In this document: positions 2,405 to 63,895 of the stretch, piece after piece
Layout: each line of letters starts with the position of its first letter
Numbering within the stretch: the first letter of the stretch is position 1
Source of the DNA: Epiperipatus broadwayi
Lineage: Eukaryota; Animalia; Onychophora
Direction: 5' to 3'
DNA: 64,000 nt
Assembly: GCA_028023455.1 (NCBI GenBank)
Contig: JAQFVV010000005.1
Coordinates: 6,696,001 to 6,760,000, forward strand
Made by a program: the position numbers and the translations under genes
Notes under the pieces: generated by a model
Databases searched by the model: none
Seen by the model: only the letters and a program-made list of their open reading frames with translations
What the model was told of the DNA's origin: nothing

Positions 2405-3160
2405 TAGTTCATATATAGATGAAATTAATACGGAATTACTGAAAACTCCTAGTGGGCTATATATATACTAACTATCAGCAAATGTAAAATATAGAATGAG
2501 TTCACTTACACTTTACATTTCATCTCATATAAGCATAACATTTATTGATGTACTTACACACTGAGCTTGATTTATATATACTTATGTAATTTCAGGACTA
2601 CTATAAGCTATTCTAAAGTAACTATAACCAGAGAGAAAGGCTGGGACTCATAATTAACAATCTCTAAACTTTAAATCAATCTGTTAATAGACAAATAAAT
2701 ATAACTTTTGGATGTGTGAGCTATATGTACACTAATGCAAACATAAAATATAGAATGAACCCATCTAAATTTTAGATTTGATCTTATATAAGAATTTTAT
2801 ATTTGCTGACAATTTTATATACAATTTGATAAGAGTTTTAAATATTTCTGTATTAATTTTACCTATATGCGAGCTATCAAAAAGTTATATTTACATCAAT
2901 TAACTGAAGATTGATTTAATATTCAGAGGTTGTTAAATATGAAGCTCAGCTTTTCCTATTGATTGGTTATAGTGAAGTTAGTATCTATAAATTATTCTCA
3001 GCATGTAAGTATAACAGTAAAGGTTGTGCTTATATAAGATCAAAGCTAAGGTAAAGGTGAGTTCACTCTACATTTTATATTTGCTGACAGTTAGTTTATA
3101 TATAGCTCGCTGGGGTTTTTCAGTACTTCTGCCTTAATTTTATATATTTATTATTATTTC
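2405..3160. repeat. Composite foldback element (imperfect ~160-bp inverted arms plus internal partial arm copies)
   Basis: ~2410-2570 is the reverse complement of ~2995-3160 (e.g. ACTATCAGCAAATGTAAAAT vs ATTTTATATTTGCTGACAGT). 2715-2870 holds a direct then an inverted partial copy of the arm. Confidence 0.65.
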
Positions 3161-3191
3161 TTTCTAATATAAAAAAAATAGATATTACTAT

Positions 3192-10622: not shown

Positions 10623-10968
10623 TAATTTCATTAATAAATTATTTTTTTCACCAATTCTTTCTATACTTAATATATTGTTAATATTATCCACACAATTAAT
10701 ATTATTTATTCCTTTATAAAATTATATCTTCAAAGGCTCAAATCTTTTCCTAATTGTCCTGCATTTGTGTTCAATATAATTAATACAAGAAGTTTCTTTT
10801 CTCAATATAATTTCAATTCACCACAAACCTTAATATTTCTATTTATCCATTAAACTTTTCAAACTAATTTCTTTATTATTATGTCTTACATTAGCTATCC
10901 AATTTTTTAAATATTTACAATCATATATCTATTCTATAACTTATTTTAAGCTGATCTTCAAATAAACT

Positions 10969-11058
10969 GGCAAAACTCCGCATACAGTAGTGCCGCTCAG
11001 TGCAAGTCAAAGTAATCAATAGATGCTTGTGTGGCATTACTATATGGAGAGTTTTGCC
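10969..11058. mobile_element. Short internally deleted member of the 36.3/41.1 kb palindromic family (outer ends only, no ribozyme)
   Basis: GGCAAAACTCCGCATACAGTAGTGCC ... GGCATTACTATATGGAGAGTTTTGCC. The interior CTCAGTGCAAGTCAAAGTAATCAAT matches the arm of the 36273 element. Confidence 0.75.
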
Positions 11059-11371
11059 TGTTTTGACAGATTGAGCAGGCATAAGAAATGGTGATCATGT
11101 GATGTTTACTATCTTCAAATGTTGAAAATTTGTTAAATGGTCACTTCAGTTATTTATGTAAATGTATTAATTTGAACACAAATCATTTAAATAAAAATGA
11201 ATTGTTTTATCATATTATAATAGGTACAGGTTGGCTGATTTAATATTCCAGAAGATGCAAGTTTTCTGGCAAATTACTAATCATTTATTTATTTAAAAAA
11301 AAAAAAAAAATTATCTCTTTAAAGGTCATCCTTACCAGTTTTAAAATATTGTCAAACTAAACTTTAATTTA

Positions 11372-12895
11372 TCATGTGAAGTGTACAAGAATCTCAAGAA
11401 CATCATAATTAGTGAAATGATTAGCTTCATGACATTTCATAATACTGATATCTGCATTCTGATAATCACATAAATGACACTTAAGCACTTGACTAATATA
11501 ACCAACTGTCAATAAATCTTTAATTTCCTGCTTATTTTGATTAAAAGTTAAATCAGAATGTTTTTTATGAATATTTTTTTTATGACATCTCAGATCACTC
11601 TGAGAGCTTGTTTTATAATCACATAAGCTACATTGGAAAGGTCTTGTTTCAGTATGTGCCTTTTGATGTATTTTAAAAGCATATTTTGCAGTAGTCTTAT
11701 AATTACACAAACTACAATGATGCAGTTCTTTTCCTATATGTGATCTTTCATGTACTTTAATATATTTTTTGTCAGCAGTCTTGTAATCACACATGGTACA
11801 GTGAAAAGGTTTTACTTCTGAATGGGTTATTTCGTGGTTTTTCAAATAAGATTTAGCAGCAGTTTTGAAGTCACATAAGCTGCAATGAAAAGGTTTGTCA
11901 CCTGTATGGGAACTTTCATGAATTCTTAGTAAACTTTTAAAAACAGTCTTATATTCACAAAAGTTACAATGAAAAGGTTTTTCTCCTGTATGAGTACATA
12001 TATGAATTTTCAAACTGTTTTTAACAGAAGTCTTATAATCACACAAGTGGCACTGAAATGGTTTTTCTCCTGTATGTGTACTTTTATGGACTTTTAATCT
12101 ATATTTAATAGCTGCAGTATAATTACACAAATTGCACTGGAAAGGTTTTTCTTTAGTATGTTTTCTTTCATGTATTTTTAAATATTTTACTTCAGCAGCC
12201 TTGTAATCACACATGAGGCAATGAAAAGGTTTTTCTTGTGAATGTGTTTTTTCATGCATTTTAAATCTATACTTTAAAGCAGTTTTGTAATCACATAAAT
12301 TGCAACAGAAAGGTTTATCTCCTGTATGAGCATTTTCATGAATTTTTAACCTAGTTTTCCCAGTAGTCTTATAGTCACACAAAGTACAATGGAAAGGTTT
12401 TTCACCTGTATGTATTCCTTCGTGCATTTTTAATTTACTTTTCTCAGTAGCACTGTAATTACAAAAGTTGCAATGAAATGGCTTTATTCCCAAATGAATC
12501 CTTTCATGTACTTGTAATCTATTTCTAACTGCAGTCTTATAGTCACAAAAGTTACAACGAAATGGTGTTTCTCCAGTATGCTTATATTTATGAACTTTCA
12601 ATCCATCTTTAAAAGCAGTCTTATAATCACACAAATTGCACTGAAAAAGCTTTTCTCCTGTATGTGTACTTTGATGTGTTTTTAATCCACCTTTCCTGGC
12701 AGATTTATAATCACATAAACTACAACGAAAGGGTTTTTCTCCTGTATGTTTTCTTTCATGCAGTTTTAGCTGACTCTTGTGAGCAGCACTAAAATTACAA
12801 ATGCTGCATTGGAAAGGTTTTTCTTCTGTGTGAGATTTGCCATTATAAAAATGAGATGTGAGTAATTTTTCTTCTGCAGAAATAGTTTTATCCAT
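11372..12895 (-). CDS. C2H2 zinc-finger protein (paralog 1): 15 tandem fingers plus a separate C-terminal finger-like module
   Basis: Intact ORF with repeated CxxC-x12-HxxxH and TGEKP-type linkers. The ORF track starts at a TTG (12988). The first in-frame ATG (12895, MDKTISAEEK) aligns with the second Met of paralogs 2 and 3. Confidence 0.93.
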   Translation of the reverse strand: MDKTISAEEKLLTSHFYNGKSHTEEKPFQCSICNFSAAHKSQLKLHERKHTGEKPFRCSLCDYKSARKGGLKTHQSTHTGEKLFQCNLCDYKTAFKDGLKVHKYKHTGETPFRCNFCDYKTAVRNRLQVHERIHLGIKPFHCNFCNYSATEKSKLKMHEGIHTGEKPFHCTLCDYKTTGKTRLKIHENAHTGDKPFCCNLCDYKTALKYRFKMHEKTHSQEKPFHCLMCDYKAAEVKYLKIHERKHTKEKPFQCNLCNYTAAIKYRLKVHKSTHTGEKPFQCHLCDYKTSVKNSLKIHICTHTGEKPFHCNFCEYKTVFKSLLRIHESSHTGDKPFHCSLCDFKTAAKSYLKNHEITHSEVKPFHCTMCDYKTADKKYIKVHERSHIGKELHHCSLCNYKTTAKYAFKIHQKAHTETRPFQCSLCDYKTSSQSDLRCHKKNIHKKHSDLTFNQNKQEIKDLLTVGYISQVLKCHLCDYQNADISIMKCHEANHFTNYDVLEILVHFT

Positions 12896-14518
12896 TTTAT
12901 ATATCTTAAAGACATCACCAAATGTTTTTTTGTCATCTAAAATCTTTTGATCTTTCTGGCCAACATCAAGCAGAAATATTTTTTTCAAATCATATTATAT
13001 AGTGTTAATAATACTTCTCATTTACTTAATTTTATGAGTTTATTATTGCCTTTATAGCAGAATGTTTTGTTCAGAAATTAACTTTTTTATATATTTGTGT
13101 TACTATTTTACTACAAATAGCAACTGGAAAATATCTTTTTTTATAGAATGTTTTAAATCAGTATTTTTAAATATTTATATCTTATTTAAAATGATAGTTT
13201 TCCCCCAAAATTTTCTGATTGGCTTTTAACTTTAACAAAATAAAAATTCTTTTTTAAAATTGGATGTTTCACTTACTAAAAAAAAAAGCAATTAAATTAT
13301 TTAAAAATTAATTTCGTCACCTATACAAATTGTACACTCTTACACAACTTTTCTCATCCTTCACCAGTATAATTAATTCAAATTAAATCCATTTGCAACA
13401 CTTTATATTGATGCCTTTTTAGAATTTCATTAGTGTTGTTATAACTGTATATTTTTATAGGGTTTTTAAGCGTCAAGCTTATTATACATTAAAATTTCCA
13501 ATTTAAAAAATCTTTAATCTTCAATATAAAATGATTTCTCAATTATCTTCAATGCATTATTTCTTTCTATTAATGTTTAACTAAGGCTATATTTTAAAGT
13601 TATTTTATAAGACCTCAAGAAATCATACTCACCAATTATTGGTATAAATAATTATAATAATACAACTAATCAATTTAGTTATTTATAGTTATATCAATAC
13701 ATTTCTTCCAAATAAATGAGACTATTTAATTTTTACATTTTTCTAATAAAACTGTTACTAAACTGTAAAAGGCAAATTAAAGTTATATACTATGTATAGA
13801 TATTATGAAGGAGGAGAACACACATATTTCTATATAGTTTTGATAATATCCTGTTCTCCATCATGAATTTCATGCATAAAGCTGAAGAACTTGTTTACCA
13901 CCATTTTTAGAAATCTCCACTGATCTTGTAAAAATAAAGGATATTGACTGATTGTATACCATTTAATAACAGATTTGCAATCATCAGCTATTAACTTTGG
14001 GCCCATCATATTTTCCAGAATAAAATGTAATAAGTCATTGTAAACTGATTAATCCAACTTGGTCTATTTCTCTTTCAACTTCTGCCATAAAGGCAATCAT
14101 AGTGATCATAGCAATTCAAAATGTTTTAGAACAATACTTTTTTTACTGCAGATAATTTACCAACCTAAACAAAAAAAAAAATTGCCAAAAATGTAGAAAA
14201 TGAAAAAAGATAATTGTGATTTTTTAATCTTAAAAATAAGCTTTTTAATATTTGCAAAAAAAAGTATTTTTTAATATATCACAAATAAAAATAATATTAA
14301 AAACAGAAAACAAATCATAAAAAAACTTTCTTTATATAACATGTTAATATGACAATGAGAAAATAACTTGAAAGAGATCTGGTCACTATATAATCTACAA
14401 AAATAATAATTAAAAAGTAAAAATAAAAAAATACTCAACAAATATATGAATATCAAAACAAAAATTACTAAAAGAAATTGTAATTATAAATTTATTTAAA
14501 CGCACATTGATTACGTAA

Positions 14519-14660
14519 ATAATATTCATTAAGGCTGTAGCCTCAAGCACATGCGTATAAAATGCGGTAGTAGGGAGCTTGTGGTTTTAAGACCTGTAGA
14601 GGTCCCTACTATCGCATTTTATATGCATGTGCTTGAGGCTACAGCCTTAATGAATATTAT
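14519..14660. repeat. Near-perfect foldback hairpin (58-bp arms, 26-bp spacer), MITE-like
   Basis: 14519-14576 is the reverse complement of 14603-14660 with two transition mismatches. Confidence 0.9.
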
Positions 14661-15140
14661 AAAAGAAATTGTCAAAATAGTAAAGTTTAATTTTGTGCTA
14701 ATGTTTATTACTTATAGGTTGTTAAAAAAAGAATTGAGTACAATAGGTAAAGAAAAGAGATATGGTTATGTAAAAAATGAAAAAGTAGTAAGTATATAAA
14801 AACAATACACTGATATTTTTATATAACAAAAGCTCCAGAAATGAAGGTTTTTTTACAATAAAGAATAATGTCTGTAAAGTTCAAATTTCAATAATTTTTT
14901 CCAAACTGAAATTAATTAAACAATTTACTCAAAATACAATTAAAATGTCATGAAAAGCAGTAAATATTAATTTTAAAAAAATAATAAAAATTTAGTATCA
15001 TCTAGTAAAATAAAACTATTCATTGTGAATTTCATTAAAATTTTTCATTAAAAGATTTAATAGTAAAAAAATCAAATCCTACATCACATAACTTAATTTA
15101 ATAAGCTTGTACCACAAATGTAATATAATGAGTGTGCTAA

Positions 15141-15598
15141 TAGCTCTAAACAAGCTTTTCCAATAAATACCAGAAAAGAAAACATTTAAATTCTCTATCT
15201 AGAATTATCCCTATCCCCAAACTGGTTTCAAGTTGATAGCCCTCATCAGTGAGGTGCTAAGATATTCAGACACTAGATCTAAAATAACAACTCAAGCGTA
15301 GTTTGCTAAGGCTATTAATGTGTGATGTAGCTGAAAATTTTTCAGACCCATATAGCTATTTAAATTAGATAGGTGAATTTGAAGACATATAGATATCTGA
15401 AAATTTCAGATTTTCTACTTAATAGTTAAATATTAGATAAATGCTGTGCTTGAGCTGATATTTTAGATCTAGTGTCTGAATATTCTAGCACCTCACTGTC
15501 AAGAGTCATCAGCTTAAAATCAGTTTGGAGATAGGAATAATTATAGATAGATATTTTAAATGCTTTCTCTTCCAGTCGGAAAAGCTTGTTTAGAGCTA
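15141..15598. mobile_element. Palindromic element (~155-bp arms, TA-flanked), diverged relative of the 36.3/41.1 kb hammerhead family
   Basis: TAGCTCTAAACAAGCTTTTCC / GGAAAAGCTTGTTTAGAGCTA termini. Internal TATCCCCAAACTGGTTTC...CTCATCAGTGAGG and CTAGATCT are homologous to the 41 kb element. Confidence 0.85.
15207..15264 (-). ncRNA. Type I hammerhead ribozyme motif (partly decayed)
   Basis: Minus strand reads CCUCA CUGAUGA GGGCUAUCAACUU GAAAC CA GUU UGGGG. Core intact, stem I CCUCA/UGGGG, weak stem II, GUU triplet. The mirror copy in the right arm is degenerate. Confidence 0.65.
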
Positions 15599-25292: not shown

Positions 25293-25449
25293 TATTACTC
25301 TGGTGATGTATTATTCTAAGTTTGTGATATGTTTAAAATAATGCCTCGATAGGATTTGCAGACAAATTTTATTAAGTTTGTCTGCACATCCTTGGAGATG
25401 TTATTTTGAACATATTACAAACTTAGAATAATACATCACCAAAGTAATA
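25293..25449. repeat. Imperfect foldback hairpin (~73-bp arms, ~10-bp loop)
   Basis: TATTACTCTGGTGATGTATTATTCTAAGTTTG...GCAGACAAA / TTTGTCTGC...CAAACTTAGAATAATACATCACCAAAGTAATA. Confidence 0.85.
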
Positions 25450-30259: not shown

Positions 30260-31654
30260 TCATTTAAATTTGATGAGAATCTCAAAAATATCACAATCAG
30301 TGAAATGACAAGCTTCATGGCTTTTCAAAGCACGATTATCTGTATCCTGATAATCACATATAAGGCATTTACATACTTTAATACTGTGACTATTATCTTT
30401 AAGAGTATATTTTATTTTTTGTTTATATTGATCACAGTTTAGAGGTGAATTTTTACAATTAGTTTGCTTATGTTGTATTAAATTATTTAGAGATCCTGTT
30501 TTGTAATCGCACTTTTCAGTATGCCTTCTTTCATGGTTTTTTAAATTATTTTTTCGCGCAGCTTTATAATCACAGAAGTTACAGTGATAAGGTCTGTCTC
30601 TAGTATGAACGATTTCATGTATTTTTAAATTACTTACAGAAGCCGATTTATAATCACAAAGTTTGCAATGAAAAGGTTTTATCCCTTTATGTCGTCTTTC
30701 ATGGTCTTTTAAACTACTTTTTACAGCAGTCTTGTAATCACACAATTTGCAATGAAAAGGTTTTTCCCCCGTATGTATTCTTTTATGAATAGTTAACCTA
30801 TTTTTTATAGCAGTTCTAAAATTACACAAGCTACAATGGTATGGTTTTTCTCCTGTATGTAATCTTTCATGTAATTTTAAACTGTTTATATAAGCGGTCT
30901 TGAAATCACACATGCAACAATTAAGAGTTTTTTCTTTTGCATGTATCCTTTCATGCATTTTTAATCTAGATTCTACAGGAGTCTTATAATTACACAAACT
31001 GCAATGATATGGTTTTTCTCCAGTATGTGATATTTCATGTAATTTTAAATTTCTTTTGTGAGCAGTCTTGTAATCACACCAGTTGCAGTGAAAAGGTTTT
31101 TCTCCTGAGTGCAATTTGACATGTTTATTTAAGTTACCTTTAGCATCAGTTTTGTAATGACACAATTTGCAGCGGAATGGTTTATCTTCTGCATATGAAG
31201 TGTCATGAGTTTTTAAATGAATTTTGACAGCAGTCCTACATTTATCCAAGCTGCAAAATAAAGATTTGCCATCAGAATGTGTGTGTTCACTGACTTGTAA
31301 ATTATTTTTTTCAATGGCATTGTAAGTACAAAAGTTGCAATGAAAAATATTTTCTCTTTTCTGTATATGGTCACAAACTTTTGATTTATCCTCAGTAACA
31401 GCACTGTGACATAAATTGCAATGGAAATTTTTTTGTTCTGAATGACTTCTTTCGTGTATTTTAAGGTCATATTTTACAACTGTCTTATAATCACATATAT
31501 AACACTGGAATTGTTTATCTATTTTGTGGACTGTTTTAGGCAATTGAAAATCATGGGATTGAGAAGCTTTGCGATGGTACTTGGATATTTTTTCTTCTGT
31601 ATGAATAATTTTACTCATTTCAAAACAATTCAATTTCTTCAGAATTGTTAACAT
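30260..31654 (-). CDS. C2H2 zinc-finger protein (paralog 2): 9 intact fingers, 3 degenerate N-terminal fingers, a half finger and the C-terminal module
   Basis: Intact 464-aa ORF from a true ATG (31654), with TGEKP linkers. Collinear with paralog 3. Confidence 0.93.
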   Translation of the reverse strand: MLTILKKLNCFEMSKIIHTEEKISKYHRKASQSHDFQLPKTVHKIDKQFQCYICDYKTVVKYDLKIHERSHSEQKNFHCNLCHSAVTEDKSKVCDHIQKRENIFHCNFCTYNAIEKNNLQVSEHTHSDGKSLFCSLDKCRTAVKIHLKTHDTSYAEDKPFRCKLCHYKTDAKGNLNKHVKLHSGEKPFHCNWCDYKTAHKRNLKLHEISHTGEKPYHCSLCNYKTPVESRLKMHERIHAKEKTLNCCMCDFKTAYINSLKLHERLHTGEKPYHCSLCNFRTAIKNRLTIHKRIHTGEKPFHCKLCDYKTAVKSSLKDHERRHKGIKPFHCKLCDYKSASVSNLKIHEIVHTRDRPYHCNFCDYKAARKNNLKNHERRHTEKCDYKTGSLNNLIQHKQTNCKNSPLNCDQYKQKIKYTLKDNSHSIKVCKCLICDYQDTDNRALKSHEACHFTDCDIFEILIKFK

Positions 31655-31745: not shown

Positions 31746-33929
31746 TATATATAATTAATTTCAATGCATTTTATTCTTTTATAGCAGACTTTTTGTAAGG
31801 AATCTAATATTTATATATATATTTGAAAGACAATTTTATCATTCCTTTTCTAAAAATTGTAACTGGAAAATATTTTTTTATATATTTACTGAATGTTTCA
31901 AAGAAAACTTTATTATTGCTTTATTACAATTTCTCTGAAATGCATTAAAATACAATTAAAATTAAAAAAATTACACAGTAAGATGATCAATAAATGAAGA
32001 TTTAAAAAACTATTTTAAAATGTCTATGAATTGCTTAAAATAAGATTTATGTAAATACTTTCATGTCATTTTTTTAATTATTTAAAAAAATAATACGTCT
32101 TTAAAATGAAACTTCATTCGTAATTCATTGATGTCTCTCAACAATTTTACTAACTGAAGATAGTGAATATATTTTTTAAAAATTTAACTCCATTATCTTT
32201 GTAAACTTGATACTTGCATAACTTTTCTTAATAGTAAAATTAATTGCTTTCAATAATATAATCAATTCAAATGCAATTGGAATTCAACATTATATATTCC
32301 CAACTAATTAGATTAATATTAAAGTTATTTTGACAGCATAAAACTAAAGTTTTAAATATCCAATGACAATATTAATTGCAATGTTTTATTTAAAAAATTT
32401 CTTTATTTGATTATCATCAATGATATTCTTTCTTCCTGTTAACTTTTATTTTACATTACTTCAATAATTCTTTTGTATCTTATTATTTTGTCTTTAAAAT
32501 AAGTCACCACAAATCAAATTTCTTTTAATATAAAGAAGACTAAATAGTTTGTAGTAATAATTTAATAAAGACAATACTAAATTATGAAAGGCAAATATAC
32601 AGTTAATGAAGGTATTTTAAATTGTCAACTATTAACATGTGGTCCATCATGTTTAATGCTATAAAAAGTAATGAGTCAGTGAAGATAAATTTATCCTACA
32701 TGACACTTTTGTGCTCCAACTTTTGTGACAAAGAAACAATAATAATAATCTTATGCAACTTAAACATTTTGTATGTGAGATTTTTAAATATGAAGTGCTG
32801 CCAACCTGAAAAAGAAAAATCAATATATAAAACATTGCTAAAAACTTGGTAAAAACTACAGTATATTATTACTATTTTTTTTATAAAAAAAATAATATTA
32901 CTATTGGAAGAAAGTATTTTTTTAAACTTTGTTTTATAATATTAAATAATATGGATATTAAATTATATGGCAAAACTTTAGAAATGATTAAAAAAAAATT
33001 CTAAAATTTTACACGGCAATATTAAGTATATAAAAAAACAAACTCTCACACACTGCACTAAAATATCTAAAAATTATGTCTAAGAATATTTAAAATAATA
33101 TGTAAACATTATCATTTAGTAAATAGTTTACTTACTACACAATTGTAAATTTATCTTTAAATACTAATAAAATAGTTTCATAAGTTTTTTTTAATATATA
33201 GAGTTGTCTTAAAACTTTAATTCCAAAAAGTTTAATAGTGCAGTCATAAAGGAAAATAAGTTTGTTAATTTTTATATTATATATTTCATTAAAAATATCA
33301 GATTATAATTGAACTTGCTTAAGTTATTTTTATAATCAATTATAAAAATTTCATTTAAATAAATGTATAGGTTAAAAAACAGATCCTTTTAAGAAAAACA
33401 AAAACATAATGTATTTAGTTTAACTATATTTTTCACTTTGTATATAAAATTTTTGATAAATAAAATTTTAAAATTTATCTATTTATTATATTGTATTTTC
33501 AAGTTAGTTATGCTGTAGAACCCACCAATATAAAATGAACTAATGACATACAAGATTAAAAGATAATTATGAATTCAAACCTAATAAAAAAAGTGATAAA
33601 ATAAGCAAGGAATTAAAAAAATGAATGATGAAATTTTAATTAAACACAATAAAAAGATGAGCTGACTGCAATGCGATTTCTAAATGATTGTGTGTTATGT
33701 AAAAACATAATTTAGTTATTCATTTGAAAATTCCAAATTATCACATGATTATGATTTTCATGTTTATACAAGCTGTTTAAACAATATGTGATGTGATGTA
33801 CTGTAGCTTCTCCTTAAACGAAGTCAAGAATCTTTCAGCAATTATGCCCAGAGAAACCTGTTAGCTACTTTATTTTATAAATACAATTTATCCAAACTTC
33901 AAACACTTTTTAGCAAACTTTATTTGTAC

Positions 33930-33972
33930 ATACACCTACGTTTCGACTGACCTGCAGTCTTCTTCAGAGTAA
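33930..33972 (-). ncRNA. Minimal type I hammerhead ribozyme motif (intact core)
   Basis: CUGAAGA A GACUG-CAGGU-CAGUC GAAAC GUA GGUG: 5-bp stem II, palindromic ACGU stem III, GUA triplet (cut predicted 33937/33936), short stem I. Confidence 0.78.
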
Positions 33973-34010
33973 CGATTTTTCATTATTTTATTTAGAAGAT
34001 CAGAATAACC

Positions 34011-34053
34011 TTACTCTGAAGAAGACTGCAGGTCAGTCGAAACATAGGTGTAT
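34011..34053 (+). ncRNA. Mirror hammerhead motif with mutated cleavage/stem III region (GAAAC AUA)
   Basis: Same core and stem II. G>A at 34044 breaks the ACGU palindrome. Confidence 0.6.
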
Positions 34054-34149
34054 GTACAAATAAAGTTTGCTAAAAAGTGTTTGAAGTTTGGATAAATTGT
34101 ATTTATATGATATTACGGCAAACATAAAGAAAAGTGTGATTTTGGTAAT

Positions 34150-36272
34150 ATTTACTTTATTTTACATTCTCCAGTCTAAGTTTTCCCATATTCTGCTCCA
34201 TCCCATTTCCATAACATAATCTTTGTCAACTCTATGGCCTTTATATCTAAATCCCTTATCTTTTCCCAAACCCAACATAAAAACCAATAATCCACTCTCT
34301 GTATAATCACTTTTTTCATATCTATTCTTTCATAACTTCATTATATGTGCCCTTTCTGTTTTCAAGCATTTACATTCAATTAACAGATGCCTAATAATTT
34401 CTATTCCTTCCTTACATAATTTACAAACTAAATCACCCATATTTTTCCATTTACATGTATATTCTCTTGTTGCTAAAGATCCCATTTGAGCCTTAAACAA
34501 TAAACTACTTTCCTTACTATTATCATATATAAACTCGCATCTAATATTCTGTTTATTTCTATATATATTTAAACACTTTTTACTCTCCATTCTAGTTATC
34601 CATCTCTCTAACTCCTTATTCTTTATTAATAAATCTATTCTTTTATCCCATTCCTTACCACTATAACATTCAACAATCCTAACACAATCATCCCATCTTT
34701 TGTACAAATATACTGATATAAATTCTTTATTTCAAATCTTTTGCATGCCGCATTACCTTTCTCACCCATCTTGTTGCCTACCCTTTACTCATAACCCAAT
34801 TAAATACTATTTTGGCTATTCTTTTATTATCCATAAACTGCAATCCACTAAACATTTTCATTTTACTTTTTGCATCTCTCATATGAAAACTTGACATCCC
34901 ATTTCTCCTTGAATTGCCTCCCTTGCTGTTCATACATCTGCATCCAATGCATGTCTTCCTACTTGCCTTTGAACTTTTTCTAAGTAATTTAATACCTCTT
35001 TACTAACACACAATGCATCATTACCATATGTTAACCCTGCTACTGCAACTCCCATATATTCTAGCTACATCATATTTATTATATGAAAACACTGTTAATT
35101 TCTTTATCACTCCCTTTCTTTTCTTTGCTTCATTTATCAATTTTTTTCTCCCAATCATCCAAATAATTTTTGTAATTACTTAAAATAATTCCCAAATAAC
35201 TATATCTATTCACCACATTTAACAATATCTCCCAATAAAAATTCTACATATTCTCTTTCCTCAATATTAACCATCATTATATTTGATTTTTCTTCACTAA
35301 ATTTAATCCCCATCTCTTTACTCACCCTTGCACATGTCAGCATAACTTCCATATCTTCTCTTCTTTCTGCACACAAAAATATATCATCCGCAAAAAAAAA
35401 AGACCTGACAAAATATATACTACCTATTAATGGTATCTCTATCCCTCTTCCTAATCTTTATATTGCTCTTTCCATTTCACTCAAACACAACACAAACAAA
35501 ATAGGTGACATAGAGCATCCTTGCCTTAGTCCCACCCCATTTTTAACTTTAACTGATTCTATATTCCCTAATTGATAATTTCTTAATAATATCTACTAAA
35601 GCTTTATCCATTCCCAAATTTTCTAAACTATCTCCTATATGCCTATCTAATCTAAAACCTCATTGCATTTTCCCCACTACATTATTCCCTTCCATCCATT
35701 TTACAACTCTTCTAGCTACTATATATGAGAAAACTTTATATAAAACTGATGTTACCACTATCGGTCTATAATTCTTTAACTTTCTATGATCCTTACCCTT
35801 TCCATTAAATAATAATCTTATTCTTGTATTAATCCAACTACTTGGGAAAACTCTATTCTGTACCATCTTATTAAAACAGGATAATAACTTTACTTTTGCC
35901 CTATATCCTAAATTCATTACCATCTCTGCTGCCCATCCATCTAAACCTCTTGCCTTTCCACTCTCTTCTCTACCTCATTCAGTTCATTTTCTGAAAACCT
36001 AATATTCCCATTACTATATGCTTTCATGTTTTCTATCACTCTATCCTTCACATCTAACATCTTTTCTATATTCATTACATATCTATTTAAGATTCTCTTT
36101 AAATCTTCTCTAGAGCTACACTCTATTCTCTCATCATCTAGTAATACTATCTCTCTCTTCTCCTTTTAATGTACAGTAATTCCAAAATTTTTTACTCCCA
36201 TCTCTTCACTTTTATTAATATCCTCTAACAATTTACTATTCAATTTCATTCTCTCTCTACAATTACCTATTT
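34150..36272 (-). mobile_element. Non-LTR retrotransposon fragment (RT + C-terminal CxxC...HxxxxC motif), clade unresolved
   Basis: Minus ORFs and remnants: KNYRPIVVTSVLYK, GLRQGCSMSPILF, FADD, YDNSKESSLLFKA...CKLCKEGIEIIRHLLIEC. Confidence 0.88.
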
Positions 36273-36645
36273 TAGCTAACTCTCCATACAGTAGTGCCAC
36301 TCGTGCAAGCCTTAGTAATCAATGGGTGGGAAAAGGTTTATGTATAAAATTTTTATCTAATGCCTACTCATCCAATATCTTCAAACTAGTTTCTAGCTTG
36401 TGACTTTCACCAGTAAGGAGTCTTGGATCTGAGACCACTGCATCAGGTGGGCTGCTGGAGGGCTGCATTAATCATAAGATCTATGTGCAGTGCTTTCAGA
36501 TTGAAGGCTCCTCAATGATGAAAGTCACAAACTAGAAATTAGTCTGGGGATATTGAATGAGTAGGCACTAGATAGGATTTTATGCACACACCTTCTTGCA
36601 TCTATTGATTACTAAGACTTGCACTACTGTATGAAGAATTTGCTA
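36273..36645. mobile_element. Palindromic double-hammerhead element (older copy; both cores carry a substitution)
   Basis: Arms ~36273-36443 and ~36485-36645. Minus core CUGGUGA A AGU-CACAA-GCU A GAAAC UA GUU. Plus core AUGAUGA A AGU-CACAA-ACU A GAAAU UA GUC. Confidence 0.85.
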
Positions 36646-36990
36646 GCAACAAGGGAATATACACACAAATGGAAAAATGTGGGTGATTTAGTCTGCAAAT
36701 TGTGTAAAAAAGGCATAGAAAATATTGGGCATCTGTTAATTGAATGTAAATGCTTGCAAGTAAATAGGGCACAGATAATTAAGTTATGGAAAAATAAATA
36801 TAAACAAAGGGATTGTATAAAAGATGGTTTCTTGGTATTTATGCTGGGTTTGGAAAAAGACAAGGGGGATTGAGATATAAAGGCCATGGAGTTGTCAAAG
36901 ATTATATTGTGAAAATGGGATGTAGCAGGATAGAGAAGAATATGGAAAAAACTTAGGGTGGGGAATGGAAAAGAAAGGTAAAGTAGTTAA
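36644..36990 (+). mobile_element. 3' fragment of the same LINE family as 34150-36272, in opposite orientation
   Basis: ATREYTHKWKNVGDLVCKLCKKGIENIGHLLIECKC matches the 34330 ORF. The 3' UTR is also shared. Confidence 0.88.
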
Positions 36991-39900
36991 AAGGTTTCTC
37001 TGGGCATGGTAGCTGAGAAATTCCTGATTCTGATACAGAAGAAGTCACAGTGCATCCCATCTCATCTCATTACTGTTTAGTTATTCATAATAAAAATTTT
37101 AATGTGACAGAATATTTCACACCTTGTTTCCAGGAATGGGACAAATTTGTTTTAAATTAGACTAAACTTTCTAATGAAATGTTTAAAATAATTCAAGTTG
37201 TACATGCCAATCAAATCATGGGTCATAAAAATGTTTTCAAAGAGCTTGCAAGATTTCATGATGACAAGAAAAGCATTGAAAATAATCCCAAAAAAAGTAC
37301 GAAACACACTTTCATATTTTCATGTTATAACTCATAATCCAGATCTGCTTAAGCCTTTATATATACTGTTTCAGGAATAATATTGCAGGCATCTTGGAGA
37401 CAATTGGTCACTTTTTCATAGGAAGAAGTTATGCACAAAGAAGTAAAATGATTAAAACAATAACAGCAGTAGTTGACTTTACCATTGATGATAAAATAGT
37501 AAAAGCAGTAAATAAATGTTGCATATTTATTATCAGTAGCACAAAGCCAATATTAAGGAAATATACTGCTAGGATCTTCAATTATCCTAATCCTCACTCA
37601 AAATGAATACATTATACAAATATAAATGAAAAAAATTGAAAGACTAAAGATGAGCAAAAGAAGTATGGCTTTTGAAATGTATTCAAACAGAATAACATGC
37701 AGGATTTTGATTTAATCAAATATAAAAATTAAAAAAAAATTCATTGAAAAACTATGTTTAAAAAATTTAAAGATAGCAAAGGAAGACATAGTAAAGGCTA
37801 AAACCAGAAAGTTAACTCATTTTGGAGAAATATTTATATAGCTTGCACATAATTCTAATAATGATAAACATAATTGGATATGAATGAACATTTATGAAGA
37901 TTCTAAGTAGTCATCTCAAAAGTTTAATATATACAAAACTACCACATAGATGGATACAGACTAATATTACATTAGCATGCATGTTTACAAAATACACAAA
38001 CACTTCTATTGTGGGTGATTTCAGTTTAACTAAATATATTGAAATATTTAATAGCAGCTGCTTAAGTATGTTTCATGTTACCTTTTTTAAATATTACATG
38101 CAAAATTTTTTTACATCTGATATTGTAATAGATATATATAAATATTAAATATCTTTTGATACATAAAATTTGAATTATCATTTACATAAAATTATGTTTA
38201 AAAATTATGTATTTAAAATTTAGTTTTGATTAAGGGCCAAAAAAGTCAAAGAATTTCTATGGTGAGCAATAAATTCCATTTCCATAAAAATATAGAATAT
38301 GAACTCTAAACTGGATTTAGAGAAAAGATTTTGTGCTTTTCTTAAATTCTGAGTTCATAAAAGCTTGATATTCTCTATCACAGAAGATTGTCTATTATAA
38401 CCTCAGATCTGTTAAGATTCATAATTAAAGTACACTTTGTAATGTTCACAATAGTAAATTATATCAATGAAAAATTATTTGGTCAAACTGATTTATAATC
38501 AAAGTTATGTTAATGAAAACTGGCAGTTCTCTTAAAATTGTCAGCACAATTTTTTGTTCAAATGATATTATGAATGTTCTATAATAGTTTTCACGCCTAG
38601 TTATGAATTCTTTTTTTTTTTGCCATAAGAATATAAATTGACTTTTTTCTAATGAGTACAAAAACTGTTTTTCAAATGTTGTCTAGATTTTCTTGAGTCT
38701 TTTGCAAATTTCCAAAAAGTATGTGAAGAAATGGACTTATCAGTTAATAATCCTCTCAAGACTTTCATTTGTGAAAAGAAAACTAGCAAAAAATTTATAA
38801 TACACCTTATTTTTTGTATTTATTTACATCAATTTGATCTTAATTACTTTAGATATAATTCCATGTTCTATACACATTAGCAAATTCACTTGAATCTTGA
38901 AATTTCTTTTAATATGAATCTTCTAGTTGAATGACAATGCTTTTCCATAAATGTTAAATTTAAGACTATTGCAAAATTAGATTGTTTTTTTTACCTTTCC
39001 TGGATGCTCAAAAGATCACTAACAGCATTAAAAATGATAAGGAAAACTTCCAATCAATTTCTAATATTATTCATGTTACTAGTAGTATTTTGCCTACATT
39101 ACAAGCATTACGTTTTTCCAGTTTCATTGAAATAATTCACTATCTGTTACACAATTGCTAGTTATGTTTTTATTACTAAAACTCAAATTGCAATTTTCAA
39201 GTTATCATAATCTATTTGATTCCTTAAACTCCATTTATCTCTGAACTGGGTTAACTGAAATTTAGCACCACAAATAGTAATATGACAGCTTGAAAAATGA
39301 TTGATTTAATAAAAACTTTCTACACATTCTTAATTTCTGATTCCTATTCCATACTGACCAAAAAATATTTTCTTTCCTTTTAACTATGACAATTCAGTCA
39401 CTTCTAATAAAAAGTTTTGTCAAATTTCATTATCAGTGAAAATATTGTAATTTGAACGGGTTTTCATTTCTCAAAGTGCAGCATTATAAAGTTTTTTTAA
39501 TTACATAATGAGCATTATAAAGTTTTTATACTGTCTATTCATAACCATTTCGAAAATGGTATATGAATAGTTAACGTTTTCTCTCAGCCAGTCTAAAATA
39601 TTTTGCTGTTAACAACAGTGTAATGAATTATTCTATACAGATTTCGAGTTGAATATGGAAATTACACTTAATAAAAAGATATTGTAGCAAGTATATGTAA
39701 ATACTTGTTGTTGTTGCTTTTTCCAGCACAATTTGAAATAAATAAACAAAAACTATTTAACGCTAAACAGAGTCATCTATTATAGAGCAATAATGAATTA
39801 CGATTAAATCCATCAATTTCAATAATTCAAAATTTGTACAACGTAAATAGTTAATTCGAGAAAAAATAAGTGAACGAAAAATCCATAAAAGGTTATTTTT

Positions 39901-40602: not shown

Positions 40603-41051
40603 GGCTGGCCGGATATGCTCAGTGACAATATTCGCAAAGAAGTCGAATATATCACATCTAAGAATATAATTCTTTTTTTGGAATATAATATTTCACTTTT
40701 GAAATTATTTAAAAAATGACAAGATTTAAAAAAATAAACTATGCTGGATTATTAATTAGCGGATTTTTGTCCATGTATATGACAAATAAAAAGACATTAT
40801 TTTTTTGAAAAAAATAACAAAAAAAAAATAAAAATAAAGGAGGCTATGCTAATATACAAATACAAGCAAGACTTAATTAACAGACAGGCAGCAAATGTTA
40901 AGATCATAGAATTGTGGGAAGGTTAGCCTTTCAAAGTGTTAGTTGACAAAGACTATGAGGATAGTCAAAAGTGCTCCTAAGTGGATAAAATTTTCGAAGT
41001 TATATTTTACATATATATCACATGATCACTATCTCATACTAACACATAATT

Positions 41052-41469
41052 GTTATTAAACAATTCAAAACAAAGCAAAACTCTTCATATAGTAGTGCCA
41101 TCTTGTGCTAACAAGAGCAATCAATGGATGCCAGAAGGCTTGTGCATAAAATCCCTATCTAGTGCCTACTCATCCAATATCCCCAGACTAGTTTCTGGCT
41201 TGTGGCCTGGATCTGAGAGCACTGCACCTAGATCTTAGGACTAGTTTCTGGCTTGTGGCCTTCATCAGTGAGGAGCCTTGATGCTCTCAGATCCAAGGCT
41301 CCTCACTGATGAAGGCCACAAGCCAGAAACTAGTCTGGGGATATTGGATGAGTAGGCACTAGATAAGGATTTTATGCACAAGCCTTCTGGCATCCATTGA
41401 TTGCTCTTGTTAGCACAAGATGGCACTACTAAATGGAGAGTTTTGCTTTGTTTTGAATTGTTTATTAAC
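41052..41469. mobile_element. Young palindromic double-hammerhead element with rearranged centre
   Basis: Outer arms (~41052-41208 vs ~41313-41469) are nearly identical inverted copies. The centre holds a second partial arm (41239-41280). Confidence 0.92.
41291..41349 (+). ncRNA. Type I hammerhead ribozyme with extended stem I
   Basis: AUCCAA-GGC-UCCUCA CUGAUGA A GGC-CACAA-GCC A GAAAC UA GUC^UGGGGA-UA-UUGGAU. Full core, two 6-bp stem I helices split by a 3x2 loop, GUC triplet (cut predicted 41335/41336), palindromic ACUAGU in stem III. Confidence 0.88.
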
Positions 41470-43760
41470 TTTACATATATAAAAGTATAACAGCAATAGT
41501 AGTTAATGGAAGAAGAATAGTGGAAATGGAATATATTATTTAAAAAATATATTGTAATTTTGTATAAAATAATGTGATTTAAAAATATTTTTTTTTTTTT
41601 TTTTTTGAATTTTAAATAATTATTATGTAAAGTTTTTTTAGAATAATTTAATGTGCTAAAAACAGGTAATACTTTTTCAAATGATAGATTATGACTTTAA
41701 GACATTTAATGTTTGCTACGGTTGTTTCTTTGCCCTATTGCCTAAGTAATGATACGCAATAGAAAGATATAAAAGGTATCTTCATTTATTTTAAAGTGTT
41801 TTTTTCTTTCACATTGTATCTCCTCATCATTTTTATTGTGGTAAACAAATAGCAATGAGGAGAGAAGTCCAACTCATAGTCTGAAGCCTCTAGCTTCACA
41901 AGCTATCTTGTCAGACCATCTAGATAAAATGTTATCTAAGGAAAAATCAACAGGCTTTAAAAAATCTATAACATTGATTGCTTAATTAAATAAAGAATTT
42001 CAGACTTTAAATAGCAAACTCATAAGTCAATGTCAAAATAATTAAAAAAAAAAACTTAAGTAATAATGTTTATGAACATTTTTCAATTTTGAGAGTTCTA
42101 TTGAACAATTAGGATGACTATAGTAATAATAATATTCAACAATCTTTAAAAACCTTGAATCAATAAATTGAATTTAACATCAACATTTTGGAGGTCATCA
42201 TGAAGAAGAAAATAACTTTACTTTATTATTTAAATGTTTTTTGTGGTACTTAGGTATTAGTCCTGAACATGGTACACCTTTTTACGTCTGCAATAATTAA
42301 AAATTATAAATTAACATATGTTATCGCAAATATATTATAGTATAATTCTCCATATACACCAGCACTGTGCTGGAAAAACCATCTACCCCCCTCCCCACAA
42401 ACTATGGTGCTTTGCATCAGCATTGTGGATGTGAAAAGGCATACCATCTATTCTACATTGCAGAAGTAGTACCTAAATATCATTTTTGTAAAATAACATA
42501 TATATATATTCATATGTTTAATATTTGTTCAAAAAATAATATTTGTATTTATTTTAGCTTTCTCTCTCTCAGATGTTTGAAGAAGGGAAATTGAAATCCT
42601 ACAGTTGCATTAGTTATTATTATTTCAGATTTATGTTTTTTCTACAAACATACTCACATTTTGATAATAAATTTGATTGTCTTGAATTTTATATATTTAG
42701 CTAATAATCCTACTTATTAATTTTAAAATATTATAATATGTTTTAATGGTTTATGAAATTTATTCTAATTTGTAAAAGTTATAAATAATATGCAGTCTTT
42801 TATTTATGATTTATTTTAGAAGTAAACTGTTATTAAGGAAATTGTTCTTATTGTATTATGGAGTATATAAATATATATTTAGATCTAAACCATTAATAAA
42901 TAATTGATTATCACAAAGAATTGCTAACATTATCTGAAGTTTTTTAAGGCTATAGTTATTAAGCTACTTGTTCATTTATATATATTTTGTTACACAATAC
43001 ATGTTTAGATATTTTGTGAAAAAAGGCTGGCATTGACTTATATTTAATAAACTTGAAAAACATATTATATCATATATTATAGTAGAGTTATTAGTCTAAG
43101 CAATTATATTTTTAGAATAAAATAAAGACAATCTTATTTATTAGATTTATAAAGTAAATCCATATTCATGTCAATACATCATATTGTTGCATATAATAAT
43201 ATCCACCAAACATATATTACCTATGACAACTTATTTTATTAGGAAAACTTTAAGCTGGAAAGAATTTTATTTAACTAAATCCATTTATTAATTGTAAAAT
43301 AATTAATAAAATATTTTATTTTTCATATAGCTGTAAATAAAATTAATTAAAAATTTTATTTGTTAAACTTGACTACATTTTTTTTTCTTATTTAATTAAG
43401 ATAATATTTACTAAATACATATGTGGCCACACACACTGGCATATATTTGAACCATAAGATATATTCTATTTAGATATTGTTTATAGAGAACAATTGGTGA
43501 ATTTATTTAGCCATCGCACACAAATGGAATTATTAATATACATGAAACACACATAGCAAGATATATTCAGATTACATATTATTATTATGTGGCTAAATTC
43601 AAATTTAGTCACCACAAACATATATATTTAATTAAATATAGTTTGGATGCAATAAAATGTACCATTTGCCACCATGCTGGATCAGTGAGTGCATTTTCCA
43701 AATGTATTCACAGTCCACTATTTGGAAGTTTCATGTTCCTTGTTGAATATTATATCATTA

Positions 43761-53988: not shown

Positions 53989-54035
53989 AAACTCTACATA
54001 TAGTACTGTCACCCAGTGCAAACCTTAGTAATCAA
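53989..54035. mobile_element. Single-arm fragment of the palindromic family
   Basis: AAACTCTACATATAGTACTGTCACCCAGTGCAAACCTTAGTAATCAA matches 36278-36322. Confidence 0.65.
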
Positions 54036-56285
54036 AATCATGTGATGCTTTAGTTTTATTGTTATTAAAGGAAAAAGATATGATTTATCTACTACTGAAA
54101 ATTATTTAATTTTCATTAAAAAACTCCACACAATTTTCCAATGTATTAACCAATAGTATAAAATTGTGTACTTGGAGGAACATTTCTTAAGATTACTTGA
54201 TAATTGGCAATTTTACTAATGTTTATAAAACCCATGATTCATGGATTTCTAATGGTTCTCAGTGTCAAGAGCTAATAATTTAGTATATAATTTAAAGATA
54301 ATAAAAATATTATTTCATTTATTTTTCTTCCTTACATATTATTCCATAAAGAACTTAACATTAATAATTGTCTGAATTTTTTATATAATCATTTAATAAA
54401 AATCTTACTTGCCTACGGAAAAACTTAACAGTGTTCAAAACTATTACAATATTTTCCAGCTGGGCTTCATGTTCATTTATTATACATTTAAAAAATCTAA
54501 ATTCTGTACCAACTTGAAAATCTAATTTACATTAATTTGCTAAAATAGCTATAAAATTTTGCCTTTTGCTTTACCATTTTAAAGTGAAAGATGAATATAA
54601 AATGTAAAGGGAGGGAATTGGTGATTTCTATCTTTAAGGCTTTTTTAGCTACTAATCATATACATTTTTAAATAAAGAAATAAATGGATACTTAACCAGA
54701 GTTATTCAGATGTGTTAATGCACAGATCATAAAATAAATCTTGATCCCTACTGAGAGATGGTCTCTAAGAAATAAACTCAATTTTTGTAATTACTGATAA
54801 TTTTCTCAAACATCCCATTTGATAGTATCATCTCTGATTATTTATGTAGATTGGTCTAAAATAGAATTATAAAGTTTATTAATGCAAATATTCAATCCAA
54901 GCTGAAAATATGATATATTGTTTTGAAGACACCATTATTACAAATCTTACAATATTATAACTTTTACCCAGGAAAGGTCTAACATGCATAGTTTCTACAT
55001 TTCTTATTGATTAGATAATGATTTTAAAACTTTGCCCAATAAAAACAATACATATTGATGGAAACATTACACTTTTTATGCAGATGATAAAATTAACAAC
55101 ACAAAGTCTACAGAAGGGTAAAACAAGACTTTTTATAAATTTAAAATCATAACCAAATTGCAAAAACTGAAATTAAACTTATATAAGTTTTTATTACAAA
55201 TAATTATAGAGTAAACAAAAATAATAAATGATCAATAAGATTCTAGCTTTAACATATGAGTAAGCTTATTTTCCTAATTTAGTTTCTCTATATCTTTCCT
55301 GTAATCTCATCAACAGTTGCAAAACTCTGGACAGGTAAAAATTACTCGAGTCTTGTATCCTTATAAATAGATGCAAATTCATGTTCATATAATAAACACT
55401 TTTCCTGCAAGGGCAAAAAATATTTATAAATCTCTTGGGGATATTTTTCTTATATTACTCCAAACATTTATAATCAAATGAATTATCTTAACAACAAATA
55501 AACTGAAAACTAATATTGTATTCATCTTCAACTTTTAAATATACACATAAATATTCAATTACAGAAATGGTGGCAAGTTGAGATAAGGAAAAAAATTGAT
55601 GAACTACAAACCCCAATCATTGGTCATCTGAGAATAAAATCATAAGATAAATATTAATTATATTACATCAAAATTGATAAATTTAACCATTAACCATATA
55701 TTGGATATTAATGACAATCATAGTTCAACTTATACTATTCCAAGAACGATTTTGGGCACCAAATAGACACCAAGAATGTTTCTATTATCCTAATTCAGTA
55801 GAGCTTTATTATCCATATTTAATCTTGTTATCTGCGACTTATATTAAAAAACAAAGGGACTCCATTAGATTATGATGTATCTTCAATATTGAAATGCTAG
55901 TATAAATTGTTAAGGGGAGTGTATGCACTGGCATCTGTAATTGAAGTTTATAAAATGTTAGCAATTGTCTGTTACACCAATTACCTACTCAAGTTATCTT
56001 TTGGGCAAAGTTTATATACAACAAAAAGCTTGAAAAAAGCGTTTCTAATTAAGAAAGCCAATAACGAGAAACTAGTCTGGGATCTGATTGACACTAACAT
56101 GTATTATTCATTGCCTATTCATGCTTACATAAATAGCTATGGAATAAAGTATAGTGTATTAAAGTTGTTCTGCTGCTACAAATATTACAATTACATATAA
56201 GTAGTCATATATTACCTTGATATAATTGATACTTTAAATTTGTTTTTGTTACTATAGATTAAATATGTATTTGCAAACACTAGAG

Positions 56286-62416: not shown

Positions 62417-63895
62417 TCATGTGAGTTGTATAAGAAACTCAAGAGTATCACTATCAGTGAAATGATTAGCTTCATGACCTTTCAAAACACTTTTATCTGA
62501 AACCTGGTATTCACATATATGACATTTAAGCACTTCAATACTTTGATCATTTCTCAGTGCACATTTTAGTTTCCGTTTATTTTGACACAAGTTCAAAGGA
62601 GCGTTCATATGATTAGATTGTTTATATAGTCTATTTAGAAAACCTTCTTCATAATCACATTCTCCAATATGTCTTCTTTCATGATTTTTTAAATGACTTT
62701 TTCGAGCAGCTGTGTAATTACATAAGTTGCAGTGGAATGGCTTTATCTCCAAATGAATTCTTAGGTGCAATTTTAGTACATATTTGCTGCCAACTTTATA
62801 ATCACACAAGGTACACTGATAAGGTTTTTCTCCTGTATGTACATTTTCATGTTTTTTTAAATCACTTTTTACAGCTGTTTTGTAATCACATAATCTACAA
62901 TGGAAAGGTTTCATTCCTAAATGTAATCTTCTTTCATGAGTTTTTAAACTACTTTTTAATGCAGCCTTGTAATCACACAATTTACAATGAAATGGCCTTT
63001 CCCCGGTATGTATGCGTTCATGACTAATCAATTTATTTTTCAGGGCAGTTCTATAACTACATAAACTGCAATGGTATGGTTTTTCACCTCTATGTAATTT
63101 TTCATGAAATCTTAAACTGCTTATGTAAGCAGTCTTGAAATCACACATGAAGCAATGAAGAAATTTTCCTTTTTCATGTATTTTTTCATGCAATTTTAAC
63201 CTAGACTTTACAGGTGATTGATAATTACATAAGCTGCAATGATACGGATATTCTCCTGAATGTGATATTTCATGTACTTTTAAACAGTTTTTGTGAGCAG
63301 TTTTGTAATTACAGAAGTGGCAATGAAAAGGTTTTTCCCCTGAATGTAGTTTGATGTGTTTACTTAAGTTACCTTTATCACTAGTTTTGTAATCACATAA
63401 TTTGCAGCTGAATAATTTACCTTCTGCATATGAAGAGTCATAAGTTTTTAAATGCCTTTTCGCAGCAGTCCTATATTCATCTGAGCTGCAAAAAAATGAC
63501 TTGTCTCCTGTATGCATTCGTTCACTGACTTTTAAATTATTTTTATCAGTGTCCATGTAAGAAATAAAGTTGCAATAAAAACATTTTCTTCTTTATGTGT
63601 ATGATCAAAACCTTTTGGTTTATTCTTAGTAGCAGTACTATAATAAATCACATAAATTGTCATGAAAAAGTATTTGATGTGAATGATTTCTTTCATATAT
63701 TTTACTATTATATTTTACATCTGTTCTGTAATCACATAAGCAGCACTGGAATGGTTTATCTACTGCATGAACTATTTTAGGCAATTTAAAATCATGGGAT
63801 TGAAAAGCATTGCAATGGCACTTGGACAATTTTTCTTCTGAATAAACAGTTTTATCCATTTTTAAATAATTTGATTTCTTCTGAATTGTAGCCAA
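62417..63895 (-). CDS. C2H2 zinc-finger paralog 3: 5' part disrupted (ORF 63638-63895), intact 379-aa 3' ORF with 9 tandem fingers plus the C-terminal module
   Basis: Both ORFs lie in the same frame and align to paralog 2. A +1 and a -1 indel between ~63645 and ~63575 introduce stops. Pseudogene, N-truncated gene or assembly error. Confidence 0.85.

Follow-up and report, generated by a model that had tools for sequence, protein, structure and literature searches.

Palindromic hammerhead elements in an Epiperipatus broadwayi contig are probable products of Penelope-type retroposition

Short palindromes carrying hammerhead ribozyme motifs recur in a 64,000-nucleotide stretch of Epiperipatus broadwayi DNA (hereafter the window), and we propose, with a probability of about 0.7, that each palindrome is the single retrotransposition product of a Penelope-type pseudo-LTR (pLTR) unit. 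The presence of hammerheads on both strands is a by-product of truncated copies joined head to head, not the signature of a new ambisense ribozyme element, and the four insertions described below add new families to a type of insertion that is already known. The first-pass annotation had taken the palindrome at 41 kb for a distinct class of element, mobilised by Penelope-like elements (PLEs) and encoding a ribozyme in both polarities. Mobilisation of the PLE type is probably correct and is the best fit to the Penelope-type minimal hammerheads and the retroposon anatomy. The distinct class is not supported, as the head-to-head arrangement with a target-site duplication (TSD) and a one-sided tail has already been published for PLEs; nor is the ambisense novelty, opposite-strand pairs of minimal hammerheads having been reported in 2014 (PMC4209133). 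The hammerheads on both strands give no sign of a viroid-like ambisense element here, which removes a tempting false lead. Nature has in addition recorded an integration mechanism compactly in the window, with four dated insertions, one of them with its empty site.

The four insertions, at 11, 14.5, 33.9 and 41 kb, follow a common plan. A TSD of 10-13 bp is flush with one end of the element, and an extension of 34-47 nt (34, 38, 45 and 47 nt) is present on the opposite side only. Each insertion consists of two 5'-truncated copies placed head to head, one with a long 3' end and one with a short 3' end. The features of the 41-kb element are as follows.

41006-41017: left TSD copy, 12 nt, TTTACATATATA; the exact 12-mer occurs again at 41470-41481
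41018-41051, minus strand: 3' extension ('tail') of 34 nt, on the left arm only, terminus ...GTGATCATGTGA
41052-41219, minus strand: left arm, inverted copy of the right arm
41239-41280, minus strand: inner segment with a complete core (41268-41239), helix II and helix III; fails the hammerhead descriptor
41294-41347, plus strand: complete minimal type I hammerhead, predicted cut after C 41335
41302-41469, plus strand: right arm, with the short form of the 3' end
41470-41481: right TSD copy, 12 nt

The two arms, 41052-41219 and 41302-41469, form an inverted repeat of 168 nt (95%), inside which lies a second, perfect inverted repeat of 42 nt (41239-41280 and 41294-41335). The TSD abuts the right end of the palindrome and lies 34 nt away from its left end; shared words of this length (12-mers) are found at ~0.6-1% of random positions. 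The left arm terminates exactly at ...ATCATGTGA, and the right arm of the 11-kb insertion and a fragment at 54 kb also contain ATCATGTGA, after which they have a few further bases in common. This 9-mer occurs five times, against 0.99 expected, and four of the five occurrences are at such termini. The extension derives from the element and not from the flank, since copies that arose independently have the terminal motif in common.

On the plus strand, 41294-41347 reads CAAGGCUCCUCA-CUGAUGA-A-GGC-CACAA-GCC-A-GAAAC-UA-GUC-UGGGGAUAUUGG. Helix I has 6 bp, helix II has 3 bp (GGC/GCC) with the loop CACAA, the palindrome ACUAGU provides helix III and its loop, and C17 is nucleotide 41335. The complete type I hammerhead that the first-pass annotation had described in the right arm is thus present, with its predicted cut after 41335 at the position given there. 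The same annotation had described the left arm as an inverted copy that carries the motif on the opposite strand. The inverted copy is real; the opposite-strand motif is not intact. The left-arm hammerhead (41215-41186) has an 18-nt deletion that takes away CUGAUGA and the 5' strand of helix I, and the inner minus-strand core (41268-41239) is without a helix I partner because CUAAGAUCU comes next.

On the minus strand of this left arm (41170-41300) the complete core ends at GUC and is fused directly to normal upstream sequence of the family, CUAAGAUCUAGG..., after which comes the second hammerhead, the one that misses 18 nt. At the equivalent place the copy at 36.3 kb (36440-36480) has kept A(T)TA(A)TC(A)TAAGATCTA. 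The source element may have contained two hammerheads ~71 nt apart, or an old template jump onto an RNA ending at the cleavage site may have produced the arrangement; homology between the centre of the 36.3-kb palindrome and a second upstream hammerhead was not significant.

The remaining insertions and palindromes belong partly to the 41-kb family and partly to others.

10964-11110: 11-kb insertion, 41-kb family; palindrome 10964-11063 plus one-sided 47-nt extension (right)
10954-10963 and 11111-11120: TSD of the 11-kb insertion, 10 nt, ATCTTCAAAT
14482-14659: 14.5-kb insertion, third family; one-sided 38-nt extension 14482-14519 (left) plus palindrome 14520-14659
14469-14481 and 14660-14672: TSD of the 14.5-kb insertion, 13 nt, TAAAAGAAATTGT
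15141-15598: 15-kb palindrome, distant relative of the 41-kb family; arms 82-84% alike, 150-nt unique centre
33877-34152: 33.9-kb insertion, different family; palindrome 33877-34107 plus one-sided 45-nt extension 34108-34152 (right)
33866-33876 and 34153-34163: TSD of the 33.9-kb insertion, 11-12 nt, TACTTTATTTT(A)
33925-33979, minus strand: complete minimal hammerhead of the 33.9-kb family, predicted cut between 33937 and 33936
36273-36645: core of the old 36.3-kb palindrome, 41-kb family; arms ~81% alike
53989-54045: fragment of the 41-kb family; minus-oriented tail piece, head to head with terminal AATCATGTGA only

The 33.9-kb insertion lies within the 3' UTR of a LINE copy, and its empty site is preserved: a diverged paralogous LINE copy 3 kb off (~36965-36992) has the target sequence once and lacks the insertion. 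In the 11-kb extension ATCATGTGA is located at 11094-11102 and is followed by 8 nt more. Neither the 11-kb nor the 14.5-kb insertion contains a hammerhead, their arms being too short to reach the motif. A TSD was not recognisable in the two oldest copies, and none was recognised for the 15-kb palindrome. Two further short palindromes, at 25293-25449 (arms of 49 nt at 94%) and 2635-3084 (arms of 48-56 nt at ~81%), have neither a hammerhead nor a recognisable TSD.

Seven head-to-head pairs are present in the window, with a different inner breakpoint in each. The 54-kb fragment is likely an eighth, with a second arm of ~10 nt and no detected inverted repeat. Every copy within the window is part of an inverted pair; solo copies were not found, nor was a direct tandem array of units, as Tandem Repeats Finder reported only zinc-finger arrays and simple repeats. 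Since siblings without a hammerhead have the same anatomy and the inner breakpoints differ, the palindrome is made anew at each integration. Whether a copy has a hammerhead is set by arm length alone: any arm that extends past ~135-170 nt includes the motif, and the motif is therefore on both strands when both arms are long.

To locate hammerheads we used a descriptor after Cervera and de la Peña (2014), with intact boxes, a helix I of at least 4 bp, a helix II of at least 3 bp, H at position 17, and a helix III that is palindromic or very short. Over the window it returned exactly three sites, at 41306 (plus), 33967 (minus) and 15249 (minus), and none in 200 dinucleotide-preserving shuffles. 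At all three the boxes CUGANGA and GAAA with H17 are present in type I order, and helix I measures 6 bp in the 41-kb right arm, 4 bp in the 33.9-kb left arm and 5 bp in the 15-kb left arm. The first-pass annotation had seen like geometry at three other places, and the palindromes 15141-15598, 33877-34107 and 36273-36645 are indeed there. Its statement that such elements carry a ribozyme on each strand is true only in part: no element has two intact motifs, three of the four palindromes having one and that at 36.3 kb none.

In each case the second motif is defective. In the 33.9-kb family the minus-strand motif has CUGAAGA followed by a bulged A, a helix II of GACUG/CAGUC that includes G10.1-C11.1, then GAAA, the palindrome ACGU and A17; its helix I is 4 bp long. 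The twin on the plus strand, at 34016, carries A in place of G16.2 and fails, so that only the minus-strand copy passes. An alternative helix III for this family, a 5-bp hairpin (ACAUA-GGUG-UAUGU), was rejected since it leaves no helix I. The 15-kb palindrome has a complete minus-strand motif (15261-15208) and a mutated plus-strand one (CUGUCAA ... AAAAU), and the 36.3-kb palindrome has mutations in each of its two cores (AUGAUGA / GAAAU and CUGGUGA).

The pairing of the helices was compared across the subfamilies. Helix II occurs as GGC/GCC, AGU/ACU, AGU/GCU and GGG/CUU, where changes among GC, AU and GU keep the pairing. In the helix II register 83% of cells are able to pair, compared with 21-43% when the register is slid, and two pairs are changed on both sides; with only six sequences the covariation is not significant, as 105 of 500 shuffles reach the score. 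The palindromes of helix III are ACUAGU at 41 and 36 kb and ACGU in the 33.9-kb left arm, with self-duplex energies of -4.8 and -3.7 kcal/mol, respectively; the corresponding ACCAGU of the 15-kb left arm is not palindromic. A scan with the Rfam hammerhead models, proposed as a check in the first-pass annotation, gave no match to Hammerhead_1, Hammerhead_3, Hammerhead_II, HH9 or HH10, either in the whole window at the gathering score or in four small regions at E<=10. This absence is expected because the motifs lack a real helix III. Rfam scans of the palindrome yielded only spurious matches to miRNA hairpins and snoRNAs.

In computed folds of the 41-kb right-arm monomer, the hammerhead fold has an energy of -4.6 kcal/mol and the minimum-free-energy fold -11.8 kcal/mol. 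A monomer fold that is predicted to be unfavoured would be compatible with a ribozyme assisted by a dimer or by a protein. The lack of an Rfam match, the non-significant covariation and the energy difference of the monomer folds count against the Penelope-type reading. A transcript through the whole 41-kb palindrome is computed to form a near-perfect long hairpin of about -335 kcal/mol, and the hammerhead fold is therefore excluded in a whole-element transcript.

The anatomy matches what has been described for PLEs. Arkhipova et al. (2013; PMC3846280) reported that PLE inserts are completed by an adjacent inverted pLTR, with head-to-head as the commonest arrangement, and that the PLE structure has an 8-10-bp TSD (Adineta vaga) and, at one end, a tail of 31 bp. 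Craig et al. (2021; PMC8557442) described an inverted 5'-truncated copy and a tail of 30-40 bp, in many cases confined to one end. Frangieh et al. (2024; PMC11167929) showed that a purified PLE protein makes nicks in both strands and extends them. Reverse transcription begins at two internal sites of the RNA, ~90 nt downstream of the point where the hammerhead cuts, and the distance between the two sites defines the tail. The insertions in the window are like those of PLEs in the head-to-head 5'-truncated pair, the short TSD, the optional 30-40-bp tail at one end, the AT-rich target and the position of the hammerhead upstream of the reverse transcription start sites. Unlike PLE insertions, the copies in the window are only pLTR-sized (60-300 nt per arm) and without an ORF. 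Compared with A. vaga PLEs, the TSDs are somewhat longer (10-13 bp instead of 8-10 bp), which counts against the PLE reading, and the extensions reach 45-47 nt.

The pLTR unit may be either a non-autonomous element or a copy with an extreme 5' truncation. We hypothesize a mechanism modelled on the biochemistry published for PLEs. A reverse transcriptase-endonuclease acting in trans would nick the two DNA strands ~10-13 bp apart at an AT-rich site, after which the element RNA would be reverse-transcribed from each 3'-OH, beginning at either of two start sites that are separated by 34-47 nt. Both cDNAs would extend toward the 5' end of the RNA, halt early (after 10 to about 300 nt) and be joined head to head. 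The minimal hammerhead would lie ~135-170 nt upstream of the start sites. The predicted hammerhead would be part of the sense RNA of the source element, of the minimal, dimer- or protein-dependent kind, and its inverted twin would have no separate function and be free to decay.

Because the window contains no RT-GIY-YIG gene, we infer the PLE partner from the anatomy of the copies together with the type of motif; priming on both strands and ribozyme activity are likewise deduced. The lack of an RT-GIY-YIG ORF among all ORFs of at least 52 aa in the 64-kb window speaks against the PLE reading; truncated copies consisting only of the pLTR are not expected to have one. Pattern scans of metagenome, viral and prokaryote genome collections with the arm motif at the DNA level gave zero matches.

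The motifs themselves resemble the minimal hammerheads that Cervera and de la Peña (2014; PMC4209133) described for metazoan PLEs. These hammerheads have a bulged base between positions 9 and 10.1, a G10.1-C11.1 pair, a short helix I, a palindrome that takes in 15.2-16.2 and loop 3, and an activity that is low and depends on dimers. Shared features are the CUGANGA and GAAA boxes, the open helix I of 4-6 bp and the tiny palindromic helix III, which by analogy would imply dimer-dependent activity. An unpaired base separating positions 9 and 10.1 is a further point in common for the 33.9-kb family. In contrast, the 3-bp helix II (GGC/GCC) of the 41-kb family is flanked by A and A at positions 10.1 and 11.1 and not by G-C, which argues against the PLE reading; in the 15-kb relative these positions are G.U. 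The same study ascribed to truncated PLEs the dual motifs that it reported on opposite strands at distances of 100-700 bp.

Retrozymes of the metazoan non-LTR type (Cervera and de la Peña, 2020; PMC7229834) are similar to the copies described here in being short, non-coding, AT-rich repeats with type I hammerheads and TSDs of more than 4 bp. They differ in forming direct tandem repeats of 170-400 nt and circular RNAs, whereas the window holds inverted pairs only. A recent preprint argues that retrozymes derive from PLE pLTRs (Li et al., 2026; 10.64898/2026.07.22.740005).

Two other readings of the palindromes were weighed against Penelope-type retroposition. If the elements were a real ambisense class, with both strands transcribed, a working ribozyme in each polarity and propagation as palindromes, the motif geometry seen four times would be accounted for, and bidirectional promoter motifs together with possible antisense templates have been raised for the pLTRs of A. 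vaga (PMC3846280). We nevertheless consider this very improbable: two intact motifs are found in no element, the centres differ between copies, siblings without a hammerhead have identical anatomy, the read-through RNA would fold into a long hairpin, and the one-sided extension breaks the symmetry. The likeness to Avsunviroidae, viroid-like RNAs, is that each of the two strands shows a hammerhead motif; the viroid ribozymes, however, are both under selection in a replicating RNA, whereas here an inverted DNA duplicate is defective in every copy. That the insertions are MITEs or foldback DNA transposons with a hammerhead-like sequence by chance appears extremely improbable, although they are, like such elements, short palindromes without coding capacity in AT-rich DNA. 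The TSDs are long and variable (10-13 bp), the one-sided extension of 34-47 nt makes the termini asymmetric, the variable inner breakpoints are a pattern of 5' truncation, the empty site is consistent with retroposition, the window has no transposase domain, and the hammerhead descriptor found nothing in the shuffled sequences. The first-pass annotation had likewise held that these are not MITEs, as the asymmetric ends, the variable TSDs and the missing transposase domain now indicate. As a rule for annotation, where a short palindrome has a TSD of 10-13 bp and its arms differ in length by 30-50 nt, it should be taken as PLE-type retroposition rather than as a MITE.

The 36.3-kb palindrome brings in a further kind of explanation, as it is associated with two copies of the same LINE.

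33784-36272, minus strand: 5'-truncated LINE copy (LINE-L) in the 36.3-kb palindrome, left arm; the 33.9-kb insertion lies within this LINE copy
36646-37073, plus strand: shorter 5'-truncated copy of the same LINE (LINE-R), at the same nucleotide of the right arm

LINE-L and LINE-R are 82-88% alike, with an NYRPI-type reverse transcriptase, a zf-RVT CCHC C-terminus without a homologue in the protein database, and a (CATCW)n-like 3' end. Both are inserted after ..TT(T/A)GCTA and before TGTTTA, and their 5' ends are ~1.8 kb apart. The 43-44 nt past each LINE copy resume the tail of the hammerhead family at the point where the arm is interrupted, and the distal arm tails accordingly lie beyond the LINE insertions, at 33741-33783 (minus) and 37074-37107 (plus). 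The tail past LINE-L significantly resembles the family tail, with a score of 16 (null 6.8 +/- 1.2), and both terminate in ATCATGTGA; the similarity of the tail past LINE-R is not significant (p about 0.4-0.6). Because the similarity starts exactly where the arm is interrupted, we regard the tail as the rest of the arm beyond the LINE insertion. Most simply, a 5'-truncated LINE inserted into each of the two arms, and did so at the same nucleotide, which may point to a target-specific LINE.

These observations bear on a functional tie between the retroposon family and the LINE, replacing the PLE or besides it, which we regard as possible but unlikely. In one version, a sequence-specific LINE homes to the tail site (..TTGCT / TTGTTT) and would have entered each arm of the 36.3-kb palindrome in a separate event. 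In the other, the LINE has its tail in common with the family and mobilises it; if this is true, the joining of copies head to head, one end long and the other short, would be a property of a LINE-type enzyme. The hammerhead units would then be SINE-like parasites of the neighbouring LINE, with a shared 3' tail, the LINE reverse transcriptase and twin priming on both nicked strands. We find this rather improbable, and treat it as the chief rival of the PLE reading. In its favour, the last 44 nt of LINE-L align with the terminal tail of the family, LINE copies in inverted orientation stand on both sides of the 36.3-kb palindrome, and the reverse transcriptase genes of the window are solely LINE-like, one of them physically tied to the family, which counts against the PLE reading as well. 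However, the similarity begins exactly at the break in the arm (after ..TTGCTA, before TGTTTA); the LINE truncations are ~1.8 kb apart and yet meet the same arm nucleotide, which suggests insertion and not co-linearity; the LINE's own end resembles a (CATCW)n terminus upstream of the tail; the LINE-R tail is not significantly like that of the family; and the LINE has no tail in common with the 33.9-kb or 14.5-kb families.

Next to the LINE-L tail, a partial plus-oriented copy of the family tail (33709-33740) adjoins the minus-oriented terminus at 33741, tail to tail. This junction gives rise to the 13-mer TTTAGTTATTCAT, present at 33711-33723 and 37076-37088, which was considered as a TSD of a LINE-palindrome-LINE composite and rejected, as the 37-kb copy lies inside the family's own tail.

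The window as a whole has ~25% G+C and is clearly eukaryotic, with decayed LINE reverse transcriptases and many short repeats; the collections searched contain none of its proteins or repeats. A second, different decayed LINE occupies 3100-4700 on the minus strand, where fragments of a reverse transcriptase retain the motifs NYRPIS, FVDYEKAFD and FADD; its closest database relatives are at most ~50% identical. A contig (44.6% G+C) retrieved for a LINE reverse transcriptase piece whose matches reach 50% or less proved unrelated, without any of the elements described here. A stretch richer in G+C (~31%) at 6300-7450 contains several overlapping ORFs of 50-96 aa on both strands, none of which has a Pfam match. 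Three long intronless ORFs code for C2H2 zinc fingers with an 84-nt periodicity.

11372-12988, minus strand: C2H2 zinc-finger ORF, 13 finger-pair matches
30260-31654, minus strand: C2H2 zinc-finger ORF, 7 finger-pair matches
62417-63556, minus strand: C2H2 zinc-finger ORF, 7 finger-pair matches

The best database matches of these zinc-finger ORFs are spread across animals and are only ~30-48% identical.
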